In this document: positions 3,805 to 51,441 of the stretch, piece by piece
Layout of the letters: the number at the start of each line of letters is the position of its first letter
Position numbering within the stretch: the first letter of the stretch is position 1
Sequence record: NC_031039.1
DNA: 64,000 nt
Direction: 5' to 3' (one strand)
Position numbers and translations under genes: made by a program
The notes under the pieces: generated by a model
Database searches by the model: none
What the model saw: the letters and a program-made list of their open reading frames with translations, nothing else
What the model was told of the DNA's origin: nothing

Positions 3805-5700
3805 TTGGAAAAGACTTATAATTTAAATGATATTCTATTATCAAATGAGTATGAAAAAATTAAAGAGGATATCAAGGAAGAAATAATTAATGATATGGCA
3901 TCTAAGAAAGTAAAGTATAGTAATACTTCTGAATTTGCTAAAAATGACTTTCTTAAAGATGAATTCATTGATTTAGTTGTTGATGGGGAAACATATGAAA
4001 TTACATATGGAAATCTAATCACATTATTAATTGTTGCAAGACCATTTAATCACTTTAAAGTACCAATGACTGAAGATTTATTATTTGATCTATCTGATTT
4101 AAAAGAATACCAAAATTATTATACTACATTGCTGGAACATTTTGGTTACAGTAATGAAATTAAATCCATTATTAAAGATGTTATTAGTGAGTTAGCAATT
4201 TTCTCTGGGGATATTAATGTAACATTTGGTAATACAGTTTCTATTAAATCACTTATTGACTTGGGAAATAAAGTAAAGAGATTTAGAGAATTATTACATT
4301 ATCGTTTACCAAATGATGAAGCATTGGAGTTTAATGATATTGAGGCTATTATTAAAAAGAATTTAGATGAAATTATGAAAATTCTTTCTGAAACTGATAA
4401 TATGCTAAGATATTATATTGATTCAGGTGCTGGTATTAACTCAAAACAATTTGGTCAAGTATTATCATTAGTAGGTTCTAAACCGGATTTATTTGGTAAA
4501 ATTATTCCTTATCCAATTAATACTAGTTTCCTAAGAGGATTAGATGTACGGTCTTTCTATATTAATGCTTTAGGGGCAAGAAAAGCTTTAATCACAAACT
4601 ATCAACAAGTAAGAAACTCTGGCTATCTAACAAGAAAAATTAGTATGTTATTGATGGATACAAAATTAATTGATTTAGATGATTGTGGAAGCCATGAAAA
4701 CAACTATCTTTCAATTAATGTTGAGAATAAAGATGTTCTAAAAAGATTCTCTAAAAGAAGTTATTTAAATAATAATGGTGAATTAGTTGAAATTGATATT
4801 AATGATGAAAGTCTAATTGGACAGGTAATAAAAATTCCTTCTCCAACTACTTGTGCATCTAATGAAGGCGTTTGTCGTAAATGTTATGGTAAATTGTTTG
4901 ATATCAATAAAGATTTAAATATTGGCATGATTGCAGTTCTACTATTAACAGATCCATTAACTCAGCGTTTATTAAGTGCAAAACACTTACTAGAGACTCG
5001 GTCTTCTAAGATCGATTGGGGAACTAATTTTGAAGAGAACTTTATCGTAAACAGAAACTTAATTTATCCTAAAGTTTATAATGGAACGGTTATTATTAAA
5101 GAAGATGATTTTAAAGAAGATGAGGAAACAGAAGAACAAGTATTTGATACATTTACTTTAAAAAGTGGTAATAGATTTATTTCTATTAGTTCACCAATGA
5201 GATTATTCCTAAATAAAGACCTTAAGAAACAACTTGATGAAAGCTTTTATAATATAGAAGAAATGCAATTTGAAATTCCATTAAATAAGCTTGATGAAGG
5301 CGATAGTTTTGCAACATTCATCATGGATAATAACGAATTATCAAAACCATTAAGGGAAATTAAAGATCTTATTGAAACTAATAAATATATTAAAGATCAT
5401 AATGTTAATGAAGTGGTAAACTATTTTATTTACCTCTTAAATGAATCAGGTATCAATATTCAGTCTGTTCATTCAGAGTTAATCATTAGAGAAATGATGA
5501 AACTAGATGATTCAGATAGAACACAATTTAAAAATGATAAAATGCCGGATTATGAAATCTTCCGTATTACAGATGCTAATTTAAAGGGAGATAGTCTATC
5601 AAGATCATTATTATTTGAGCAAGTTAAGAAACAGCTAACTACACTAGATTATGATACATTTAATAAAACAAAATCTTCAATTTTAGATAAACTACTTTAA
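3805..5700 (+). CDS. rpoC: Phage multisubunit RNA polymerase beta' subunit, C-terminal half (probably non-virion RNAP)
   Basis: Bridge helix QQVRNSGYLTRK..DLDDCG, Zn motif PTTC-x6-CRKCYG, trigger loop IGMIAV..TDPLTQRLLSAKH; TTG start after GGAGG; early-type promoter. Confidence 0.9.
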   Translation: MEKTYNLNDILLSNEYEKIKEDIKEEIINDMASKKVKYSNTSEFAKNDFLKDEFIDLVVDGETYEITYGNLITLLIVARPFNHFKVPMTEDLLFDLSDLKEYQNYYTTLLEHFGYSNEIKSIIKDVISELAIFSGDINVTFGNTVSIKSLIDLGNKVKRFRELLHYRLPNDEALEFNDIEAIIKKNLDEIMKILSETDNMLRYYIDSGAGINSKQFGQVLSLVGSKPDLFGKIIPYPINTSFLRGLDVRSFYINALGARKALITNYQQVRNSGYLTRKISMLLMDTKLIDLDDCGSHENNYLSINVENKDVLKRFSKRSYLNNNGELVEIDINDESLIGQVIKIPSPTTCASNEGVCRKCYGKLFDINKDLNIGMIAVLLLTDPLTQRLLSAKHLLETRSSKIDWGTNFEENFIVNRNLIYPKVYNGTVIIKEDDFKEDEETEEQVFDTFTLKSGNRFISISSPMRLFLNKDLKKQLDESFYNIEEMQFEIPLNKLDEGDSFATFIMDNNELSKPLREIKDLIETNKYIKDHNVNEVVNYFIYLLNESGINIQSVHSELIIREMMKLDDSDRTQFKNDKMPDYEIFRITDANLKGDSLSRSLLFEQVKKQLTTLDYDTFNKTKSSILDKLL

Positions 5701-23331: not shown

Positions 23332-25099
23332 TTTTTTTTGTATACTCAAAGACTAAATTTCCACAATCCCAAATTCTATCATAACCAGCTTCTCTCATAA
23401 TTTGAATTTCTGTTTTATCATTACTATAAATTTCTGGAAATAATTCTTTTAATCTTTGTTTTCTATAGTTGTATCTATGTGAAAGACTCAATTTATTTTT
23501 ATTAAAATACCAATAATTTGGCTGAGAGTTATGCATAAAGTGAAAGCTATTTTTATGATATACATTTCCTTCTGACCATCTTAAATCAGCATATGTTATG
23601 ATTTTATTCCAATCATAATTCTTTTTAAAATAACTGAATAATTTTCCAAAACTACCTATTACATTATAGTCTCTTTCTGTAGCAAATCTACTTAATTCAT
23701 AGTCATATTTATTCCCTTTTTGCCCTAAGCTAACTCTAGGTTTACAGAATGTCATTACTGCTACTAACTCATCACCCTCATTCCTTGGATACCATAGTCC
23801 TAGTTTAATAGTAGAGTTATCAGATCCTTGAATATGATTTTTATCTAAAAAATCTCTTTTCACATTATTCTGAATTTCTTCTATATAACATTTTCTAGCA
23901 TATATTTTTTCTCCATTATTTAAACCTAAAATATGTTTTATCTTTCCCTTTATAAGTTCTTTATTATCAATCCACTCATTCTCAAATAAATGAATTAATC
24001 TTATACCCTTTTCATTACATTTTTTCAATTTATTTAAATGGTAGTTTCTATCTTTTCCTTGAGATTCACCATGCCAATATAAACCGTTATATTCAATTGC
24101 TATTTTCTTTGAAGGTATATAAATATCCAGTTCTAAACCTTCAAGTATTTTTCTGTCTGATAGAATTACATTAGTGCTATTGGGGAGAATTTGTTTAATA
24201 TAATCATATAATTCAATCTCATCTTTTGAATTATGTTTCTTTAGTTGACATCTGGGACAATCTCTTTTAACTTTTTTACCTCTTGAATTACCATGTAAAA
24301 TATCGACCGGTCTAACCTCCCAAGAATAACCACATGAATGCTCAATAACTATTGGAGTTTTATTATTAATATATCTACTCTTAATTGTATAATCATTACT
24401 ATTAAATATTCTATAAAAATCTTCTTTAAAACCATTAGATCCTTTATTTTTTGGTTTTTTATTACATATATTACACCTTTTTCTTTTTAGGAAATTAGTT
24501 GGTGTAATAAAGAAATTATGAGAATCACTAGTATTGTGTCTCATCTCAATTTTATCTTGAGAGCTAATATATTCTCCTAATACAGTATATTCATCTCCTA
24601 CTAAATCATATACTTCTTTAATAAACATTTCAGTAGTCTTTGTCTTTTTCCTTTTTATTAGTTTCTTAGTACAATCAGGACATCTTGAACCCTTACTGAG
24701 AAAGTCATTAGGTCTTTTTTTAAATTCCTTATTACAGATGTTATGTCTAAGTAATACTAGTTTAGAACTATTAATATATTCTCCTAATACAGTATATTCA
24801 TCCCCTACTAAATCATACACTTCTTTAATAAACATTTCAGTAGTCTTATTTTTTCTTTTAGATATTCTCTCTGATTTATGTAAAGGACATCTATTACCTG
24901 CATTTAAAAAGCCATTTGGTGTGACATAGTATTCATGACTGCATTTTTCATGTTTCATTTTTATTTTATTATTAGTTCCAGTATATTCTCCTAATACAGT
25001 ATATTCATCCCCTACTAATTCATACACTTCTTTAATAAACATTTCAGTAGTCTTCTTTTTAGGCAAAACAATCATCCTTTTATATAAATTGGATTTCAA
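23327..25099 (-). CDS. Free-standing homing endonuclease-like protein (zinc-ribbon repeats + PD-(D/E)xK + Hef-like C-terminus)
   Basis: Repeats KTTEMFIKEVY.LVGDEYTVLGEY..H..C...RCP.C; ELDIYIPSKKIAIEYNGLYWH; C-terminal YELSRFA..YADLRWS..IWDCG. Confidence 0.75.
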   Translation of the reverse strand: MKSNLYKRMIVLPKKKTTEMFIKEVYELVGDEYTVLGEYTGTNNKIKMKHEKCSHEYYVTPNGFLNAGNRCPLHKSERISKRKNKTTEMFIKEVYDLVGDEYTVLGEYINSSKLVLLRHNICNKEFKKRPNDFLSKGSRCPDCTKKLIKRKKTKTTEMFIKEVYDLVGDEYTVLGEYISSQDKIEMRHNTSDSHNFFITPTNFLKRKRCNICNKKPKNKGSNGFKEDFYRIFNSNDYTIKSRYINNKTPIVIEHSCGYSWEVRPVDILHGNSRGKKVKRDCPRCQLKKHNSKDEIELYDYIKQILPNSTNVILSDRKILEGLELDIYIPSKKIAIEYNGLYWHGESQGKDRNYHLNKLKKCNEKGIRLIHLFENEWIDNKELIKGKIKHILGLNNGEKIYARKCYIEEIQNNVKRDFLDKNHIQGSDNSTIKLGLWYPRNEGDELVAVMTFCKPRVSLGQKGNKYDYELSRFATERDYNVIGSFGKLFSYFKKNYDWNKIITYADLRWSEGNVYHKNSFHFMHNSQPNYWYFNKNKLSLSHRYNYRKQRLKELFPEIYSNDKTEIQIMREAGYDRIWDCGNLVFEYTKKK

Positions 25100-25129
25100 C
25101 TATTATTTTGTTTAGTTGAAATCCAATTT
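25086..25129 (-). promoter_or_regulatory. 17-bp inverted repeat whose 10-nt loop is exactly the late promoter AACA-N6
   Basis: Arms 25086-25102 and 25113-25129; minus-strand loop AACAAAATAA followed by TA. Confidence 0.6.
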
Positions 25130-25145
25130 GTTTATCAATAAAAAA

Positions 25146-28100
25146 TTATTCTGAATATATTTTACCAATTTCTCGTTTAAGATGTACTAATGCTTTGTTT
25201 AAATATAGAGCATTATAAATATCAACGGTCATGCGTGAAACGATACTTAATGGACTCATAATGGCTTCAATGTTCTCATCTGGATCATTCTCACTAAAAG
25301 GCTCTTGATCTTTAGGAATAACATCAGATACAATTGTCTTAAGTGCTGTATAATACGTAATCTTATCTCCAATACCAAGTTCATCATCATACTCAATATA
25401 AATCTCAATGAGTAGTCCATCTACCTCAGTACCTTTAATTTTCTCACCTGATTGCTTTTGAATAGGTTTAAGATTAACAGAAGTCAGATCATTAGTAACA
25501 GACTTAATCTTATCTTCTTTCTTCTTACTATCTTTAATATAGTTCTTCAGAATCTTTTGTACTGAAGGAGAAAACTCACTGATATCCTTATTGTAATACA
25601 TTACAACATCTACAATCTTACCAGTATATTTAGAACTTACCTTGTTCTTAGATAACTCATTAATAGTCTCATTAAAGTCATCTCCTAGTTTATCTAAGAG
25701 TTGGTTGAGTGATTTATCTTCAAAGGAGTTTTCAAAGATAATCAATGGATCACCAGTCTTAACCATATCGCCTTTCTTAACAATAAAGTCAATGTTTGAG
25801 TTAACTCCAAGAGCAAGTTCTTTCTTCATAGTAATTTTAGTAGATAGGTCTTGAGATAAGCTTTCTGTGATAATACTACTATCTTCATACGTGTAATCTG
25901 CGCTTGCTAGTGCTACTTTACAAAGCTTCCCTGTAGTATACGTGATATCATCTTTCTTATCGCCAAGGAAGTAACTTGGATTCTTCGCTAGGATATCATC
26001 TTTTTTGAATTTCTCTCCTACTTTGATAATGAGTTCTTTACGATTAGCAATGTAAACAATTATCTTCCACCAAATTCGCTAGTTTTGGTGCGCCCTCTAA
26101 CGGACTGCTCCATGTTACCATGAAGTTGAGACTATATCTTCAAAGTTCCCTGTTTCCCAGTATACATAAATAAAAGTATACCAGATTTCATCTCAGAAAC
26201 CTGCCACCAATCGCTTGTGGGGTACTCTACTCATCTTTATTAATAAGATTTTCGATAGTCGTTGAACGTTCTCTATTAGTTTAATAGAGCTTCGCTTCTG
26301 ATTATCCTTTTAATAAGGACTTCCCAGAAATTAAAGGAATTTAACGTGAGCCTTTAAACCCACCATTACTATTCTTACTCATATGCTCGGAGAGATCAAT
26401 GACGTCTTTCTTACCATCATTATAACGAACGACAGCTAGTTCATGTTCTTCATCTATGGACTCTAGAACCCCATCTTTTTTTGCTCTAAACACAAAGTCG
26501 TCACTTAGAATATAAGCAACAGTCTTCTCTACACCACTACCAAATAGAGGTTTAGATTGCTTTGTGGTAGGAATGATCGTTAACTTCCATTAGATTCGCT
26601 ACGTCTAATGCGTTCTCTTATGAACTGCTCTATATTTCTATAGAGACGAGACTATATCACTATCCTTATCTATTAAGGATAACCCCCATTTCCATTTAAG
26701 GGATTCTCACCCACTCCAATCGCTTGAGCCGTACTCCTATTGCGGAATTTCACCGCTACTCACAATCCTAAGATTGCTTTCGGATAGTCGTTGAACCTTA
26801 CTCATAAAGAGTCTTGGATGCTGATTGCCCATATATCCTTTAGATTGTTACACTTTGGTACTAAAGGCTTTAGGATTTTCCAGCAGTTAAAGGGTTTTGC
26901 TAGCAATATTACTACTACTAGGCACGAATCATGCTTTTGCTGCGTTGTTTGCATTCCAACGCGCGGTGGGTCGGCATGACGAGCAGTAAAGGAGTTTAAT
27001 AACTCTGCCGGACCATAGATATTTGTCGTATTATTTTTTGTATTTGGATTGGTGTCTAAGAATCCTCGTGTGTTTTTGAATGCTGGATCAAAAGTTAACT
27101 GTCTAACCCATTACCTTCATATAGGTTCGCTACGCCTATACCGTTCTCTTATGAACTGCTCTATGTTACCATAGAGATGAGACTATATCTTTATCTAGTC
27201 AAAAAAAAAAGAAAGGAGATGACTAGATATCTCCCATTTCCATTTAAGGGATTCTCACCCACTCCAATCGCTTGAGCCGTACTCCTATTGTGTGTTAACC
27301 ACTAAAGGATAGTCGTTGAACGTTACTCTCGTTATAATTAAAAATAATTTATAAAACCGTTTTTCTCAGCAATTTCTTTTCTAAAAGTAATTGCTAGTTC
27401 TTTAGCTTTTTCAAAACCATATTTATTGACTGCAAATGTTTTAATAAATTTTTTATGATTAACACGGATTTCAGATTCCCATCTATTTTTCTTTTTAGAA
27501 TATCTTATTCCTTTAATTCCAGAAGTATTATCGTTTCTTAGTGATGTATTTCTATTATTCATCATTTGAGAAACCTCACGCAAATTACTTTTTCTATTAT
27601 TTAAACTATTTCTATCTATATGATCAATTACATTATTATTATCTTTAATATCCATTAGGTATCTATGAAGCTTTCCACCTGAATTACTTGAAATATAAAA
27701 TGAATTATTTCTTTTAGACCAGATAGCTCTCCAAACATGCTTATTTATTTTATCAATATCTTCAATATCAATTTGAGATTTTACGATACCATATGTTTTT
27801 GAAAAAGTAACTAATAATGCATGATCATCTAATACTTCAATAAAATTATATGCTCTTTTTCCTTCTTTTAATGTTTTCATAGCTATACGCTCACTATAAT
27901 CTCCATATAAAACTTCTGAATAATGTGCAAGGGAATTTGATTTCTTTTCTTTATTATAGAAACTTACTCTCCATAATTTTTGTTCTTTTAGATATATTAT
28001 TTTATTTTTTTCCATAATAGTAGCTCTCCTTTTTAACTTACTACTATTATAATATATATTTAACGAGAGTCTTCGATACGGATTGTCCTATTATTAGGAG

Positions 28101-31100
28101 TTTCCCGTAGTTAGAGAGATTTTATCATTATATATCACTATATAAGGGGGCAGTTTAATTCACCCCAACTTTCATTATCTTCCACTAGATTCGCTACATC
28201 TAATGCGTTCTCTTATGAACTGCTTCATGTTACCATGAAGATGAGACTATATCATCATCCTATTAGGATGCCTCCCATTTCCAACTCCAATCGCTTGAGT
28301 TGTACTCTACTCCCTTCCTTCTAACTAGCGTTATCACAACGATCTGTTAGAGTGGTTTCGATAGTCGTTGAACCTTACTCTAATGAGTCTTGGATGCTGA
28401 TTGTCCTTAAAGGATTTTCCAGCAGTTAAAGAGGTTTACTTATAATATTTCTATTATAAGGGACTATTATAAATCTTGTCTGGGAATTCAAGAATTATAA
28501 TAATTCAATCCGAGTCGGGTGTTGACATTGCCATGATTCCACGCATACTAGGGTCATAAGCACGAATATCAGTTGTGTAAGCATCCGTTTTCTTCATATA
28601 GGTTCGCTACACCTATACCGTTCCTTAGAACTGCTCTAAGTTTCCTTAGAGACGAGACTATATCATCACTTAAAAAGTGCCTCCCATTTCCAGCCTCAAT
28701 CGCTTAGACTGTACTCTACTCCCTTCCACTAACTAGCATTATTGTAATGATCTGTTAGAGTGGTTTCGATAGTCGTTGAACCTTTACCTTATTACAAATA
28801 ATTTGTAACTTAGGTACTTGGTTGCTTATGATTACCCAATCCTTTAAATTTTTACCATACCTGAATTGTTATATTCAGCCATCTATTATGTTTCCATATA
28901 GATTTGGTATTAAAGGCTCTAAGGGTGTTCCAGCAGTTAAAGAGGTTTTAATTGGACTAAACACTTTAATCCAAGTTTCTTCCTGAAAGCCCCTTGTAAG
29001 TAGCCGCACCACCCTTTTCAATTTCCAAAGAAGGGTTAAGGACACTATATTCATCGACAGTAGGTGAATTCATTAATGTCTTTAATAGAATATCCTGTGG
29101 AACAGACATCTTAATAGGATTACCAGCTTTCAGTGTATCCTTATACGTTTTAAATGAATCTGCCAAGATTTTATATAAGTAGGCATTTACTTGCTCAGTA
29201 CCACGAATTCGATATGAACTCATATCATTCAGTGGACTATAGCTCATATCTTCCAATAAGGTATTCGCATACAACAATATGTCATAGATATTCTCAGGTA
29301 ATTCTAACTGTTTCAGTACATCTAATGTGATAGGATCAACCATTAGAGATAGAGTATTATGAAGACCTTTACCCATATTTCTGCTACCGAACATCTCATA
29401 GAAAGTTTCAATATAAGGATCTTTAGAGTTCATTTCTTCAAATGTATACTCTTCAGTAGCCATTGTACTTAGACCACTTAATAATAGGGAATTTCTCAAT
29501 AAAGAATTATTATAATATAGGTATCCATCTTTAAAACGGATCTTGTCATAGTCATCATCAATTGTAATTCTCTTATTCTTAGTATCAAAGCTATATTCAA
29601 TATTATATCTTTCTAATAAATCTTCTAATCCTAATTCATATCCAAGAAGAACCACAAGGGGAATCATTCTATTATTGATACGAACTCGGTTATATGCTAG
29701 AGACTTAGAATTACTTAAAGAAGATAATTTTTTATAAGCTTCCTCACTAAGTGAAGTAACAATAACTTTAATAATGAGTTCTGAAAGACTCATATCAGTA
29801 TTTTCTTGTTTCTTATTATTAATCAGATAAACTCTTTTACTTGAACGCTTAAGAGCAATAACGTTTTCATTATCTTTTGTATGACCGATTGGTAAGAATT
29901 GTTTATCGTCAATATTAATCTTAGCAAGCTTAGCCATATTATCAAGATCACTTTTCAATAAATCTTCTACTTCTTTTTGACTGAACATAAGTTTATATTC
30001 ATCATTCTCTAAGCTTAGAAGGAAGGAAGAGATCTCATTATATTCAAGAGTTGTTTCATATCCCTCATTAATTGTAAGAGCATTACCTAAGCGATAATTA
30101 AACTTCTTACCTGATACCTTAAATTCATTTAAATCCATACCAAAGAGTTTCTTAAGTTTCTCAGTTTTATGAGATAGTTTAGAACCAAAACGCATGACAA
30201 AGAATTTATTATAGTTAGTAGTAATCTGAACTTCATCAGGTTTTGTTTTTACAATTGGTAGAGATAGAATTTGTTTCAAAATCAATTTTTTACCACCATT
30301 AATATTCATAAACCTACCATCTCTGATAATAGGATAATCGAATTTAACAGTATGCTTTACATTACGGTCATCTTGGAAAGTAACAGTATAAGTTAGTTTC
30401 TTTGATAAATCAGTAGATGTGTCTTCTGTTTTAATATCACTTACAAATAATTTAACATCACTATCTCCATTAAATGATGAAAGAACTGCAACTAAGTCTT
30501 TTTTCATCTGTTTCTCAAAGTAGCTCATATCAAAATCTTTAAGATTTGAATATCTAGTTTCTTCTTGAATGACATTTGTATTGGTAATTGGCTTTCGGTC
30601 AATACTTGTTGATTTAAAGTCATCAATAATATCCTGAATATTAATATCATCAAGAGTAACTTGTTTTTGTTTTTCTTTTAAACGTTCAAGAGTCTTTCTC
30701 TGTTTAATTTCATCTCCACCAGTAGACTGAAGCTCTTTAAGAGTTGAAACATCAGCTTTTAATTCCTTACTGTTATTTAAGATATCAATGATTTCATCTT
30801 CACTTTTATCAAGAATATCTTCATCACTTGAATCAATAGCTTTTTCAATATCATCACCAATCTTATCAGTAACTTCAATTGCACTACTAGATAGTTTTGT
30901 ATTTCCATCGATTTGGAAATTACTTAATAATTTTTCTTTAACTTTTTCAGATTTTTCTTTTACTAATGCATCTCTCTTGTTTTCTGTTTCTTGAGTTGCC
31001 TCTTCCTTACCTAGAGGTTTTTCATCATTATTAGTCTTCTGATGATTTGCTGTTTTAATAAGAATATTTAATGCATTAAGGAATCTATTTGCAAGAAGAT

Positions 31101-31764
31101 TAGAAAGTTCATCATTAATATTAAATTTAATAAATGTATTATTAACAGTAGTGTAAAAAATAAAATCTACATTTTTAAGTTCTTTCTTCTGTTCCTCTGT
31201 TAATAGCTTTCTCTTAATTGCCATATAGATATAAGCAAAAGGTGTTCTTGCATTATTTAAGTCAAAGAATGATGGATCAAGAACATTGTCAGGAACAGGA
31301 ATTGCTACTGCTTTATTCTCATATGATGCACCCTCTTTAATTTTAGATATAAGAAAATCAAAATACATTTCAACTCGTTTTCTTCCACGAACTTTAATCT
31401 CTACTTCATTCTCAAGATGCTCATTTGTAATATCATAGATCAAGTTAAGATCATTATAATTAGTTAAAGCACGTTTAGTATAAATAATACTAGAGCATTT
31501 TGCTTTTACCTCATCATAATATTTCTTTTGATCTACAATAATTCTTTTATTCTTCTGAATGGTATTGAATGCTCTTGGAATATATACTCCTCTAAAAAAA
31601 GAAGGACTGAATATATTAGAATTAATAAAATCAAATATCTCACTTTGATTATTTCCTGAAAAGAAAATCAAATTTGAATTACGGTCATTTTTCCTTTTTT
31701 TAATGGATGAAAGTTTTATATTAGAGTACACTCTCAATTCCTTGAGATTATCAAGATAAAACAA
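25146..31764 (-). CDS. rpoB: Phage RNA polymerase beta subunit, N-terminal half (probably virion RNAP); six exons, about 1397 aa after splicing
   Basis: Exons 31764-28969, 28585-28508, 28172-28162, 27108-26931, 26577-26358, 26056-25146 join in frame giving GLSGRNLD|DAYT..STPDSD|KVGV|VRQLTFDP..HADPPRVGMQTTQQKH|IIP..NSNGG|FYI..YTYEDS, collinear with beta motifs GPGG, TPEG, DDANRALMG.NMQRQ, RSNQ, GYNYED; late promoter at 31790. Confidence 0.9.
26057..26357 (-). mobile_element. Group I intron 5 of RNAP beta (301 nt)
   Basis: P1 GUGGGU|/GCUCAC; P10 UAAA/UUUA; P7 elements; terminal G. Confidence 0.9.
26578..26930 (-). mobile_element. Group I intron 4 of RNAP beta (353 nt)
   Basis: P1 GCAU|/GUGC; P10 GAU/AUC; P7 elements; terminal G. 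Confidence 0.9.
27338..28015 (-). CDS. Intron-encoded HNH-AP2 homing endonuclease
   Basis: LHRYLM..IDHIDRNSLNNRKSNLR (HNH); NTSGIKG..W...F.V.KYG...A (AP2); possible second AP2-like segment at the N-terminus; own SD AAGGAG. Confidence 0.9.
   Translation of the reverse strand: MEKNKIIYLKEQKLWRVSFYNKEKKSNSLAHYSEVLYGDYSERIAMKTLKEGKRAYNFIEVLDDHALLVTFSKTYGIVKSQIDIEDIDKINKHVWRAIWSKRNNSFYISSNSGGKLHRYLMDIKDNNNVIDHIDRNSLNNRKSNLREVSQMMNNRNTSLRNDNTSGIKGIRYSKKKNRWESEIRVNHKKFIKTFAVNKYGFEKAKELAITFRKEIAEKNGFINYF
28014..28061 (-). promoter_or_regulatory. Intron-internal early-type promoter plus start-codon-sequestering hairpin
   Basis: AAATATATATTAT at 28061-28049; perfect 10-bp stem 28041-28050/28014-28023 with the SD in the loop. 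Confidence 0.7.
28162..28172 (-). other. 11-nt micro-exon AAAGTTGGGGT (K-V-G-V)
   Basis: Lies between terminal G of intron 2 and P1 of intron 3; needed to keep the frame. Confidence 0.85.
28173..28507 (-). mobile_element. Group I intron 2 of RNAP beta (335 nt)
   Basis: Long P1 GGAU|U/AGUCC; conserved P4 AACUGCUGGAA and P7 elements; terminal G. Confidence 0.85.
28586..28968 (-). mobile_element. Group I intron 1 of RNAP beta (383 nt)
   Basis: P1 GGAU|UAA/UUAGUCC with U.G pair; P7 GACUAUC/GAUAUAGUC; terminal G; P10 AAGUGUU/GAUGCUU. Confidence 0.9.
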
Positions 31765-49105: not shown

Positions 49106-51441
49106 ATGGCAGATGAACAGCAAAACGTTGATGAACAACAGTCACAGATAATTGGAGATGAGTTTTTCCAAGAAGGTAACTCTAATTCAGATTCAAAAGG
49201 TGGATTTGGAACAAGTGTAGAATATACTGATGGTTTTGAAGCGTTAATTGGATCTTCTAAGGGTGGTTCTGGTTCTTATGCTACACCTACATGGAATCCA
49301 TATAAATCAGATAGTGTATTAGGATTACCTTTATACTATAATGATTTAGCGGATCCTTCGGGAAGAGTATACAATCAAACCATTATTCAAGATATTCCTA
49401 ATATATACATGGTTCCCGGAATTCCATCTATTAATAGAAATATGATTGACGTAGCAGGAAAACGTATTATTCCTGCTACTCTTTCTCGTGCATTAATGGA
49501 TTTTCAAAATAATCCAAATAGTATTTTTAATTTTGGAGTTAGAGGAGTAAAAAGTGGTAATGACCTTCGTTTCATAGGGTTTAAAGCAGATTATTCTGAA
49601 TACTTTAAATATGTACAAACTATGTTAAGTACTATACATTCATATATGGCAATGGATGGCATATTTGATTTATATAGATTCTCAGATGACTTTAATAATA
49701 GTTTTAAAAATTATGGATTATGTTTTTATGCAGATAAATCTACAACTATTTCTGAGTCAGCTGATAATACTTATGCGGCTTCTAGAACAGCAGAAATGGT
49801 AAGTGAGAAAGCGGCTACTTTAAGGGAAGCAGATTTATTATATCCTACAGGAAGTACAACATCTCGTATTGTTGACTCAATTAAAGCGGCTAATCCAATT
49901 GGTGTACTAGAATCATTAGGTTCATTTGATGGAATTATCACTCGTACATCAAATGCATTATTTCGTGTTGTAAATGGATCACAATTAATGTTCCCTGACT
50001 TTTGGCAAGATTCTAGATTTGATAAATCTTATAATATTAGTTTCAAATTTTATAGTCCTTATGGTGATAGAGAAAGTATATTTAGATATGTGTATGTACC
50101 TTTTATAGCACTATTAGCATTAGCATTGCCTTAAATGACGGGGCAATTAAAACTCTTTTAACTGCTGGAACATCCTTAGAGCTTATTAGACTACAACGTG
50201 ACTGGTGACAGTGAGCGTGAATGTTTAAAAACTAATAAGATTGGACAATCAGCAACTAGTTAAAACTTCCACATGGAAGTTACTAGCTCAACGACTATCG
50301 AAACCACATCATTTGATGGAAGGAAGTAGAGTACCCCACAAGCGTGGTTACATTTAGGCATAAATGTAAGTATAGTAAACTAATACTATATGGGAAACAA
50401 AGAGCATGATGAAGGCAAAAAGCTGGAGTGAAGATATAGTCTCAACTTCTATGGAAACATAGAGCAGTTCATAAGAGAACGCACTGAAGTAGCGACTCAG
50501 TGGAAGGTTATGCGTCAAGACGGTTTATTAGGATATCAGCAACCATTCTTTGTAAGAATGTCTCGTCCGGGTTAACTAAATAGCTCGGCTTATGAGTAAT
50601 CATAAGAAACAATCATTCTCTAATTGCTGGAAAGTCTTAACATGTTGTGATGAAGATAATCAGCAGCGAAGATTATTAGTTTTAGATTGTGTAATAAAAA
50701 ATTATATCAATAGTAAAATAAACAAAATAATATAAAAATAATTATTGTAAGATTAATAATATTCCACTTTTAAGAATACCATATAAATATAGGGATACTG
50801 TTGATATAATTCTAGAAGACTTCTTTACTAATAATAACGTTCAACGACTATCCGAAAGTAATCGTTAGATTATGAGTAGCCTAAAAATAGGCAATAGGAG
50901 TACGGCTCAAGTGTTTGGAGTGGGTGAAAATCCCTTAAATGGAAACGGGAATCCCCTCTTTAGAGAGGGTGAAGATATAGTCTCATCTCTATGGAAACAT
51001 AGAGCAGTTCATAAGAGAACGCATTAGATGTAGCGAATCTAATGGAAGGTAATGTATTTTGACATAGATATGGGAGTAGTAACAAGCTTAACTATCACTA
51101 AAGGCGGAGCTGATAGTCTTTGGACAGTTGACGGTCATCCGCAAATGATTGAAGTTAATATGAACGTAGTAGATTTATATCCACAAATGATCCAAATTAA
51201 AGATATTGGTTTACTTGCATATAATCTGGGAATTGCATCATTCTTAGAAAACATGGCAGGAATAAGACCAGACCAATTAAGTTTTCTTAAATTTAAATCA
51301 TTAATTAATAGAAAACTATCAAATTCATTATTGTTTACTACTTTCCTTGATGGAGGTTCAGGAATTAAAGATAGAGTTGGTAATAAATTTGCTGACTTCT
51401 TCTATGAACTACAAGGTAAGTTTAATAATATATTAAGATAA
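49106..51441 (+). CDS. Tail tube initiator/baseplate protein; three exons, about 490 aa after splicing
   Basis: Exons 49106-50131, 50513-50572, 51055-51441 join as LALALP|RQDGLLGYQQPFFVRMSRPG|YFDIDMGVVTSLTITKGG; follows the tape-measure gene. Confidence 0.75.
50132..50512 (+). mobile_element. Group I intron A (381 nt)
   Basis: P1 UUGCCU|/GGGCAA; perfect P10 UGACG/CGUCA; P7 GACUAUC/GAUAUAGUC; terminal G. Confidence 0.9.
50573..51054 (+). mobile_element. Group I intron B (482 nt) with AT-rich P6 extension
   Basis: P1 CCGGGU|/GCUCGG; P10 AAAUA/UAUUU; P7 elements; terminal G. Confidence 0.9.

Follow-up and report, generated by a model that had tools for sequence, protein, structure and literature searches.

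A hairpin over the start codon of an early intron-encoded homing endonuclease gene of Bacillus phage AR9: a candidate transcript-origin translational gate

The stretch of 64,000 nucleotides (nt) analyzed here (record NC_031039.1; hereinafter the window) shows 100% identity to bases 124001-188000 of the genome of Bacillus phage AR9 (KU878088.1), and AR9 coordinates are obtained by adding 124000 to window positions. It contains g189, a late gene that encodes the N-terminal part of the virion RNA polymerase (RNAP) beta subunit, and, within the third intron of g189, the homing endonuclease gene g190, which is transcribed early from a promoter of its own. A hairpin covers the start codon of g190, with the early transcription start site located inside its 5' arm, and this arrangement probably makes the translation of g190 depend on which promoter made the RNA: transcripts that read through from the late promoter of g189 carry both arms and are predicted to fold over the initiation region, whereas transcripts from the promoter of g190 are predicted to remain open. 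The hairpin is best read as a transcript-origin translational gate of the type known in phage T4 and as one of a small class of such elements in AR9. No earlier description of a hairpin that covers a start codon and holds the start site in its 5' arm appears to exist: the words hairpin, stem and secondary structure do not occur in the 2017 AR9 paper (Lavysh et al., 2017; PMC5312081), although the 2016 AR9 genome paper may mention a hairpin.

The g190 cassette in intron 3 of g189

The main features of the locus, all on the minus strand, are as follows (window coordinates).

25146-31764: g189, virion RNAP beta subunit (N-terminal part), late gene; six-piece join in the GenBank annotation (KU878088.1)
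27109-28161: intron 3 of g189, group I, holds g190; putative boundaries
27338-28015: g190, open reading frame (ORF) for a 225-aa HNH and AP2 homing endonuclease (ORF list, Pfam, PHROG)
28061-28070: 5' strand of ribozyme helix P6, pairs with 27334-27325 (whole-intron fold; alignment with ORF-less paralogous introns)
27325-27334: 3' strand of P6 (whole-intron fold)
28049-28061: virion-RNAP early promoter, 13/13 match to AAATATATATTAT (published consensus and g190 promoter)
28042: g190 transcription start site, an A (AR9 152042; Table S2 of PMC5312081)
28040-28051: 5' arm of the hairpin, perfect core 28050-28041 (ATAATAGTAG); overlaps the last bases of the promoter, the 6-nt spacer and the start site
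28040-28024: hairpin loop, 17 nt enclosed by the 10-bp core (TAAGTTAAAAAGGAGAG)
28026-28032: Shine-Dalgarno (SD) sequence AAAGGAG, in the hairpin loop
28013-28024: 3' arm of the hairpin, perfect core 28023-28014 (CTACTATTAT); covers the SD-AUG spacer and the AUG (28015-28013, with a mean unpaired probability of 0.10)

The g189 gene consists of six exons and five group I introns (RF00028, Rfam), all introns being located between positions 26108 and 29011 on the minus strand, and its published late start site is at AR9 155790 (window 31790). The g190-bearing intron is the third of the five Rfam matches, and its match is split by the ORF into two halves, 28171-28012 (30.7 bits) and 27352-27159 (51 bits, with the RF00028 gathering threshold at 50 bits). 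Because of the P1 pairing GGGGU/GCCCC, the reading frame KVGV/VRQ and the colinearity with the allele of phage Goe21, we infer that the 5' splice site of intron 3 follows U28162 and that the intron ends with G27109; self-splicing is suggested by a reading frame that continues across this putative junction. In addition to the covariance-model match, P6 closes around the ORF cassette, so that the P6 loop is occupied by the promoter, the hairpin and the g190 ORF. The hairpin begins 9 nt after the 5' strand of P6, and the stop codon of g190 ends 3 nt ahead of the 3' strand of P6; therefore, a terminating ribosome would occupy the ribozyme core.

In GenBank (KU878088.1), g190 is annotated as 'HNH homing endonuclease, AP2 domain'. 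The protein matches the Pfam AP2 domain with 52.2 bits (cutoff 33.3) and HNH_3 with 22.7 bits, slightly below the cutoff of 24.8, as well as PHROG 99 'HNH endonuclease' (E = 1.5e-22). With an HNH motif and a DNA-binding domain, g190 is a putative homing endonuclease, which would cleave the intronless allele site-specifically. It is the sole intron endonuclease of AR9 with an early promoter: the intron endonuclease genes g079, g146 and g147, and the free-standing g188, have late promoters of their own. The published tables of early and late promoters list none for g271, an HNH gene in the intron of the non-virion RNAP gene g270, and its initiation region is not occluded.

Early promoter and transcription start site of g190

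The promoter of g190 and its early timing were already known and are experimentally established (Lavysh et al., 2017; PMC5312081). The AR9 early consensus defined in that study is AAATATATATTAT-(6N)-G+1, and the exact 13-mer occurs in 23 copies in the 250 kb of the genome, each of which has a published early start 19 nt downstream of it. At g190, the consensus is followed by the 6-nt spacer, and the start is found at the consensus spacing with an A in place of the G, as is also the case at g265 and g044. The start is a primary 5' end in the published differential RNA sequencing (dRNA-seq) data, listed in Table S2 of PMC5312081 as 152042(-) with a 27-nt untranslated region (UTR) and a terminator exonuclease (TEX) enrichment of 3.82; the same table capitalizes the A at 28045 as well, without explanation, and this A may mark a second start. 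In the published RNA-seq tables, g190 RNA is present at 5 min, when g189 RNA is absent; expression at 5, 20 and 40 min is 291, 406 and 427 for g190 and 0, 24 and 390 for g189 (PMC5312081).

The initial annotation of this locus, made without database searches, had proposed that the endonuclease has its own early-type promoter within a late gene and that transcription starts within the 5' arm, rather than upstream of 28050 or not at all. The published start site and RNA levels bear this out, and the early expression of a nuclease from inside a late gene, although correctly deduced, is not new. The early-promoter 13-mer and the stem are both present as described there, but the former does not directly precede the latter: the two overlap by the AT at 28050-28049, with which the 13-mer ends and the 5' arm of the core begins.

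A scan of the sequence for host-type promoters yielded 10 sigma-70-like sites against 7.8 expected; there was no enrichment and none of the sites was relevant.

Geometry and stability of the hairpin

The perfect 10-bp stem over the A and T of the ATG, and the 17-nt loop containing the SD (AAAGGAG, 28032-28026), are found as initially annotated. In the RNAfold prediction, the stem gains a terminal G-U pair on either side (U28051-G28013 and U28040-G28024) and thus reaches 12 bp; as a consequence, the AUG is paired in full and 15 nt are left in the loop. With a free energy of -11.0 kcal/mol, the stem is more stable than any of 200 shuffled sequences (z = -5.0 in one frame and -3.6 in another). 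When the whole intron is folded with its flanks (1113 nt), the 12 pairs of the stem form with probabilities of 0.79-0.98 and P6 forms too; the AUG and the SD are unpaired in this fold with mean probabilities of 0.10 and 0.86, respectively. By opening cost, the g190 initiation region ranks as the 12th most occluded among 264 predicted AR9 gene starts. Given that perfect inverted repeats of 10 bp (loop 3-30) are common in AR9 (160 compared to about 29 in Markov-1 simulations), the 10-bp repeat by itself is weak evidence, and the argument rests on its position.

The SD of g190 (GGAGAG, 28024-28029) is also complementary to the CUCUC of the P6 5' strand (28065-28069, minus strand). This pairing could provide a transient second occlusion until the 3' strand of P6, approximately 700 nt downstream, is transcribed.

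Predicted dependence of the occlusion on the start site

The start site at 28042 is located inside the 5' arm (28051-28040), such that the early mRNA retains three of the 12 arm bases and loses nine. The RNA that begins at 28042 is predicted to fold at only -1.3 kcal/mol, on par with shuffled sequences, in agreement with the initial proposal that a transcript starting in the 5' arm would be unable to form the stem of the long RNA; the RNA that begins at 28045 folds at -4.6 kcal/mol with the AUG untouched. The predicted cost of opening the region from -14 to +2 is 13.7 kcal/mol in the read-through RNA vs 3.0 kcal/mol in the promoter-initiated RNA. This long-minus-short difference in opening cost (hereinafter the switch score) was computed for all published early start sites; the value for g190, 10.7, exceeds those of all 169 control genes with a pseudo-start at -28 (median 0.4, maximum 8.0). 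In the shuffle null, the 60-nt upstream context was replaced by the P6-loop context, as the pairing of the SD with the P6 5' strand is a confounder. With the P6 loop alone as the context, the difference in opening cost is 7.1 kcal/mol and is reached by none of 1000 shuffles of the 5' UTR in which the SD and AUG were kept. The control promoter P159, which has the same spacer AATAGT and no complementary 3' arm, shows no switch.

These results suggest the following scenario. Early in infection, the injected virion RNAP would start at A28042 and produce an mRNA that lacks most of the 5' arm and, accordingly, the stem, leaving a strong SD and the AUG free. Late in infection, the non-virion RNAP would read g189 from its late promoter, and the intron RNA would contain both arms; in this RNA, the 12-bp stem would bury the AUG and the SD-AUG spacer, initiation by ribosomes would be poor, and ribosomes would be kept off an ORF that abuts the 3' strand of P6 in the ribozyme core. 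Since AR9 does not form a phage nucleus, ribosomes presumably reach its nascent RNA. The early mRNA would then supply the endonuclease already in the first minutes of infection, and the late pre-mRNA would not serve for its synthesis. The repression of the long transcript by the hairpin is a prediction of the folding model; its benefit might lie in splicing or in nuclease dosage, and, where co-infecting relatives without intron 3 are present, an early nuclease might home into them or interfere with them. Circumstantial support for such a role as a weapon comes from the early expression of g190 and from the presence of three intron insertion sites within 11 nt, with the flanking exon recoded among relatives (see below).

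Similar hairpins at other early promoters of AR9

Switch scores of at least 10 are found at five of the 24 early promoters with short UTRs (g047, g265, g108, g190 and g083) and at none of the 169 controls (Fisher p = 2e-5), and the initiation regions of g047, g265, g108 and g083 are the four most occluded among the 264. The four other loci, all on the plus strand, are listed below.

L005:39459-39507: hairpin-bearing early promoter of g047; stem of 22 bp, -26.8 kcal/mol, z = -10.9
L006:35576-35634: hairpin-bearing early promoter of g108; stem of 17 bp, -20.8 kcal/mol, z = -5.7
L006:18226-18304: hairpin-bearing early promoter of g083
L009:21999-22088 (AR9 221999-222088): g265 hairpin; perfect stem of 18 bp, 54-nt loop, z = -5.0

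At g047, g108 and g083, the promoter core itself provides the 5' arm of a long stem, its partner being the region of the SD and AUG of the gene that follows; at g047 and g108, the sole non-consensus base of the promoter, a C, pairs with the G of the AUG. The stem of g047 differs in phage PBS1 at one position, where an A-U pair becomes G-U. The g265 stem encloses both a late (222040) and an early (222051) start site and covers the AUG of g265, a Hef-like homing endonuclease gene that is found in AR9 and PBS1 only and is located directly behind the late virion-RNAP gene g264. The same-strand upstream neighbours of g083, g190 and g265 are late genes.

The survey of the promoters also bears on a DNA-level explanation, namely that the repeat forms a cruciform at the start site or serves there as an operator bound by a protein, and is involved either in autorepression similar to that of I-TevI or in the modulation of virion-RNAP initiation. 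The repeat does straddle the start site, and an operator overlapping the I-TevI promoter is a binding site of I-TevI itself (PMC2988022). However, the best match between the intronless target and the promoter region of g190 is 11/20, a value reached by 299 of 300 shuffles, and most of the 38 published early promoters have no repeat extending over both the start site and the AUG. Furthermore, where repeats do occur, the 5' arm ranges from -52 to -8 whereas the 3' arm is always on the SD or AUG, which fits the logic of RNA, and we consider the DNA-level explanation the least probable of those weighed here.

Extending the preferred reading, promoter-straddling hairpins might constitute a general AR9 code, under which RNA made by the virion RNAP is translatable and RNA of the same gene made by the late RNAP is not. 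In this extended version, the code would concern above all g190 and g265, two mobile endonuclease genes located in or next to virion-polymerase genes, whose products could be immediate-early weapons against co-infecting relatives, and helix P5 of intron 3 would have co-evolved with the promoter via compensatory changes that created a CCGTAT element at -38, typical of the fastest, 'pre-early' promoters. We regard this extension as possible but rather doubtful.

The gene g145, a late gene that follows the early gene g148, was rejected as a candidate with the polarity of the T4 gates: its switch score is high but its structure is no better than those of shuffled sequences (z = -0.9).

Intron 3 in the relatives of AR9

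The comparison of the relatives involves one further feature.

28162-28172, minus strand: 11-nt micro-exon (AAAGTTGGGGT) between introns 2 and 3, exon 3 of g189 (sequence; colinear with the Goe21 protein ...PDSDKVGVVRQ...)

The promoter and hairpin of PBS1 are identical to those of AR9. In phage Internexus (L003, reverse-complement positions 5130-5360), intron 3 is kept but the ORF is lost: positions 27995-27356 are missing, leaving a remnant of five codons, and one AT repeat of the promoter is lost as well, whereas the hairpin and the ribozyme are intact. Judging by this comparison, the Internexus intron would be a decayed stage of the homing cycle. Goe21 lacks AR9 introns 1 to 3 and carries a single intron with a different ORF, of 344 aa, at a site between those of AR9 introns 2 and 3; seven synonymous differences are found in the 21 nt of exon that follow, while g189 is otherwise approximately 98% identical. 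The endonuclease is polymorphic: AR9 and PBS1 have the ORF, Internexus has a deletion of it, and in Goe21 another intron and endonuclease take its place. Taken together, AR9 and Goe21 have three distinct intron insertion sites within the 11-nt micro-exon, and the clustered sites along with the recoded exon look like the footprint of competing homing endonucleases.

The retention of the hairpin in the Internexus intron after the loss of the ORF and of the promoter consensus, and its position 9 nt from P6, would also be compatible with a role in the structure or stability of the intron RNA that has nothing to do with translation, the hairpin either compacting the long P6 loop or protecting the excised intron. 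We consider this very unlikely. Internexus is 97% identical to AR9 in this region, so the retention carries no weight; in the paralogous introns without an ORF, a short loop suffices to close P6 and no comparable element is required; and the 3' arm coincides exactly with the AUG and the spacer.

Weighing the evidence for a gate

Several results weigh against the interpretation of the hairpin as a gate. The SD, which would be base-paired in a T4-type gate, is not: it is located in the loop, with a mean unpaired probability of 0.86, and, with the SD exposed in a 15-nt loop and the stem being A-U rich, a ribosome docked on the SD might melt the stem. When the cost of opening the AUG only is considered, the long RNA exceeds the short one by only about 1 (1.07) kcal/mol, and this difference, which 93 of 1000 shuffles reach, is not significant; accordingly, the predicted start-site effect is one on the whole initiation region and not on the AUG alone. 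In the 60-nt upstream context, a large score is kept when either arm is shuffled (36 and 46 of 500 shuffles reach the original score) because the SD can also pair with the 5' strand of P6. A search for g190 relatives that could reveal covariation (IMG/VR, and tblastn of 50,697 phage records) returned AR9 and PBS1 only, with identical leaders. The Internexus hairpin outlasts a decayed ORF and promoter but, at this level of identity, is uninformative and adds no positive support. Finally, the early gene g154 is located behind the late gene g153 without such a hairpin, so that the gating, if it exists, is selective rather than universal.

Some of these points, namely the unpaired SD, the AUG-only opening cost and the search for covariation, would fit a chance repeat in A+T-rich sequence next to a real promoter, devoid of regulatory effect, with g190 being translated from any RNA that contains it. 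Moreover, about 29 perfect repeats of at least 10 bp are expected in the genome, and eight of the 10 core pairs are A-U. Still, chance appears to be an unlikely explanation. No shuffle of the UTR matches the start-site-dependent occlusion of the whole initiation region, the score of g190 is above those of all controls, and a similar arrangement, with far longer stems of 17-22 bp, recurs at four other early promoters, with the p value for the class given above. In addition, the 5' arm sits in the free 6-nt spacer, which has no complement at P159.

Comparison with known systems

In phage T4, the genes for I-TevI, I-TevII, I-TevIII, segB, e and soc, as well as mobE of phage Aeh1, are preceded by a hairpin within which a late promoter is located, and transcription from this promoter frees the ribosome-binding site (RBS); removal of the I-TevI hairpin impairs td splicing (PMC2988022). 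Two properties of a T4-type gate are found at g190, namely its location in a transcription unit of another temporal class and the lack of an intact 5' arm in the transcripts from its own promoter; a third, occlusion solely in the long transcript, is predicted by folding. As with I-TevI, the ORF occupies a peripheral loop of a group I intron within such a unit. As in the T4 gates, the gene's own promoter is immediately upstream and its start site is inside the hairpin, with the long RNA folded over the initiation region and the short RNA open, and the rationale, keeping ribosomes out of the ribozyme, would be the same (PMC2988022). The differences are that (i) all T4 gated genes are late and are silenced in early or middle read-through RNA, whereas in AR9 an early gene would be silenced in late pre-mRNA; (ii) T4 hairpins sequester the SD, whereas the AR9 stem covers the AUG and the spacer, with the SD in the loop; (iii) the AR9 RNAs are made by two phage-encoded multisubunit polymerases and those of T4 by a reprogrammed host enzyme; and (iv) unlike the case of I-TevI, no operator-like copy of the target site was found near the g190 promoter, and the effect in AR9 is a predicted one.

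A precedent that involves the same host translation machinery is sigG of Bacillus subtilis, for which earlier work had proposed that a hairpin blocks translation of the read-through transcript from an upstream operon; in the study concerned, an RBS hairpin of -6.2 kcal/mol cut translation 2-4 fold (PMC5942855). The sigG hairpin, too, cannot form in transcripts from the gene's own promoter; unlike g190, however, sigG is a cellular developmental gene and its stem is longer than 20 bp. Less closely related are sigma-54 promoters, where read-through expression of the gene that follows is reduced by a sequence in the promoter itself (bioRxiv 10.1101/086108); there, the insulation involves short CT-rich motifs in E. 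coli-type promoters, and there is no phage or intron gene and no long stem over an AUG.

With regard to the nuclease, the closest counterpart is gp210 of phage phiPA3, which introduces a nick into the intronless allele carried by a co-infecting relative and reduces the yield of that relative (PMC11620839). In both cases, the phage is a phiKZ-related jumbo phage and the HNH endonuclease is encoded in a group I intron of the gene for a virion-RNAP beta subunit; the two differ in insertion site and in accessory domain (AP2 in g190), and AR9 is not nucleus-forming. We liken g190 to gp210 on sequence grounds, the cleavage and competition data being those of gp210. The word promoter does not occur in the main text of the gp210 paper (PMC11620839). 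Both precedents invoked in the initial annotation, the I-TevI hairpins and phiPA3 gp210, had been cited accurately.

If the proposed gate is real, the T4 principle, under which an intron endonuclease is translated from its own transcript only, protecting splicing, would reach a Gram-positive jumbo phage with two phage-encoded polymerases. The device would work both ways, here with an early gene silenced in late RNA, and late AR9 RNA-seq values for g190, g265, g083, g047 and g108 would overstate protein synthesis. With B. subtilis as the host and a virion-polymerase gene as the target of an immediate-early homing endonuclease, AR9 would also be a tractable system for assessing the generality of phiPA3-type interference competition.

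Additional features of the locus

Two further elements of intron 3 and two observations outside of it were made in the course of this analysis.

28076-28081, minus strand: CCGTAT, upstream element common to a subset of early promoters (CGTAT at -38 to -34 of the start) and also the 3' strand of ribozyme helix P5
27204-27235, minus strand: terminator-like hairpin and U-run within the P8 loop of intron 3

The CGTAT motif occurs exactly at -38 to -34 in eight of 37 published early starts, compared to a base frequency of 3.5e-4 per base; in g120 it is found at -36, and g292 also carries it if the genome ends are joined. It is present in all six 'pre-early' transcription units and in four of the 32 others (p = 7.6e-5). 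The main text of the 2017 AR9 paper (PMC5312081) makes no mention of this element. In intron 3, the 5' strand of P5 has changed in step with the CGTAT strand, relative to introns 2 and 5.

The terminator-like hairpin consists of 7 bp, three of them G-C, followed by UUUCUUUUUUUUUU, and is located approximately 105 nt past the stop codon of g190. It competes with P8, and no U-run is present in the P8 loops of the other g189 introns displayed in the Rfam alignment. Speculatively, it could form the 3' end of the early g190 mRNA.

Just past the stop codon of g189, the late start of g188 (window 25101) is located inside a 17-bp hairpin (approximately 25086-25128, minus strand), a structure that looks like the g189 terminator with the promoter of the next gene in its loop. 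On the plus strand, the virion-protein gene g205 contains a group I intron (50111-50464, 56 bits); g205 is annotated in three pieces, and the small ORFs g206 and g207 lie inside.

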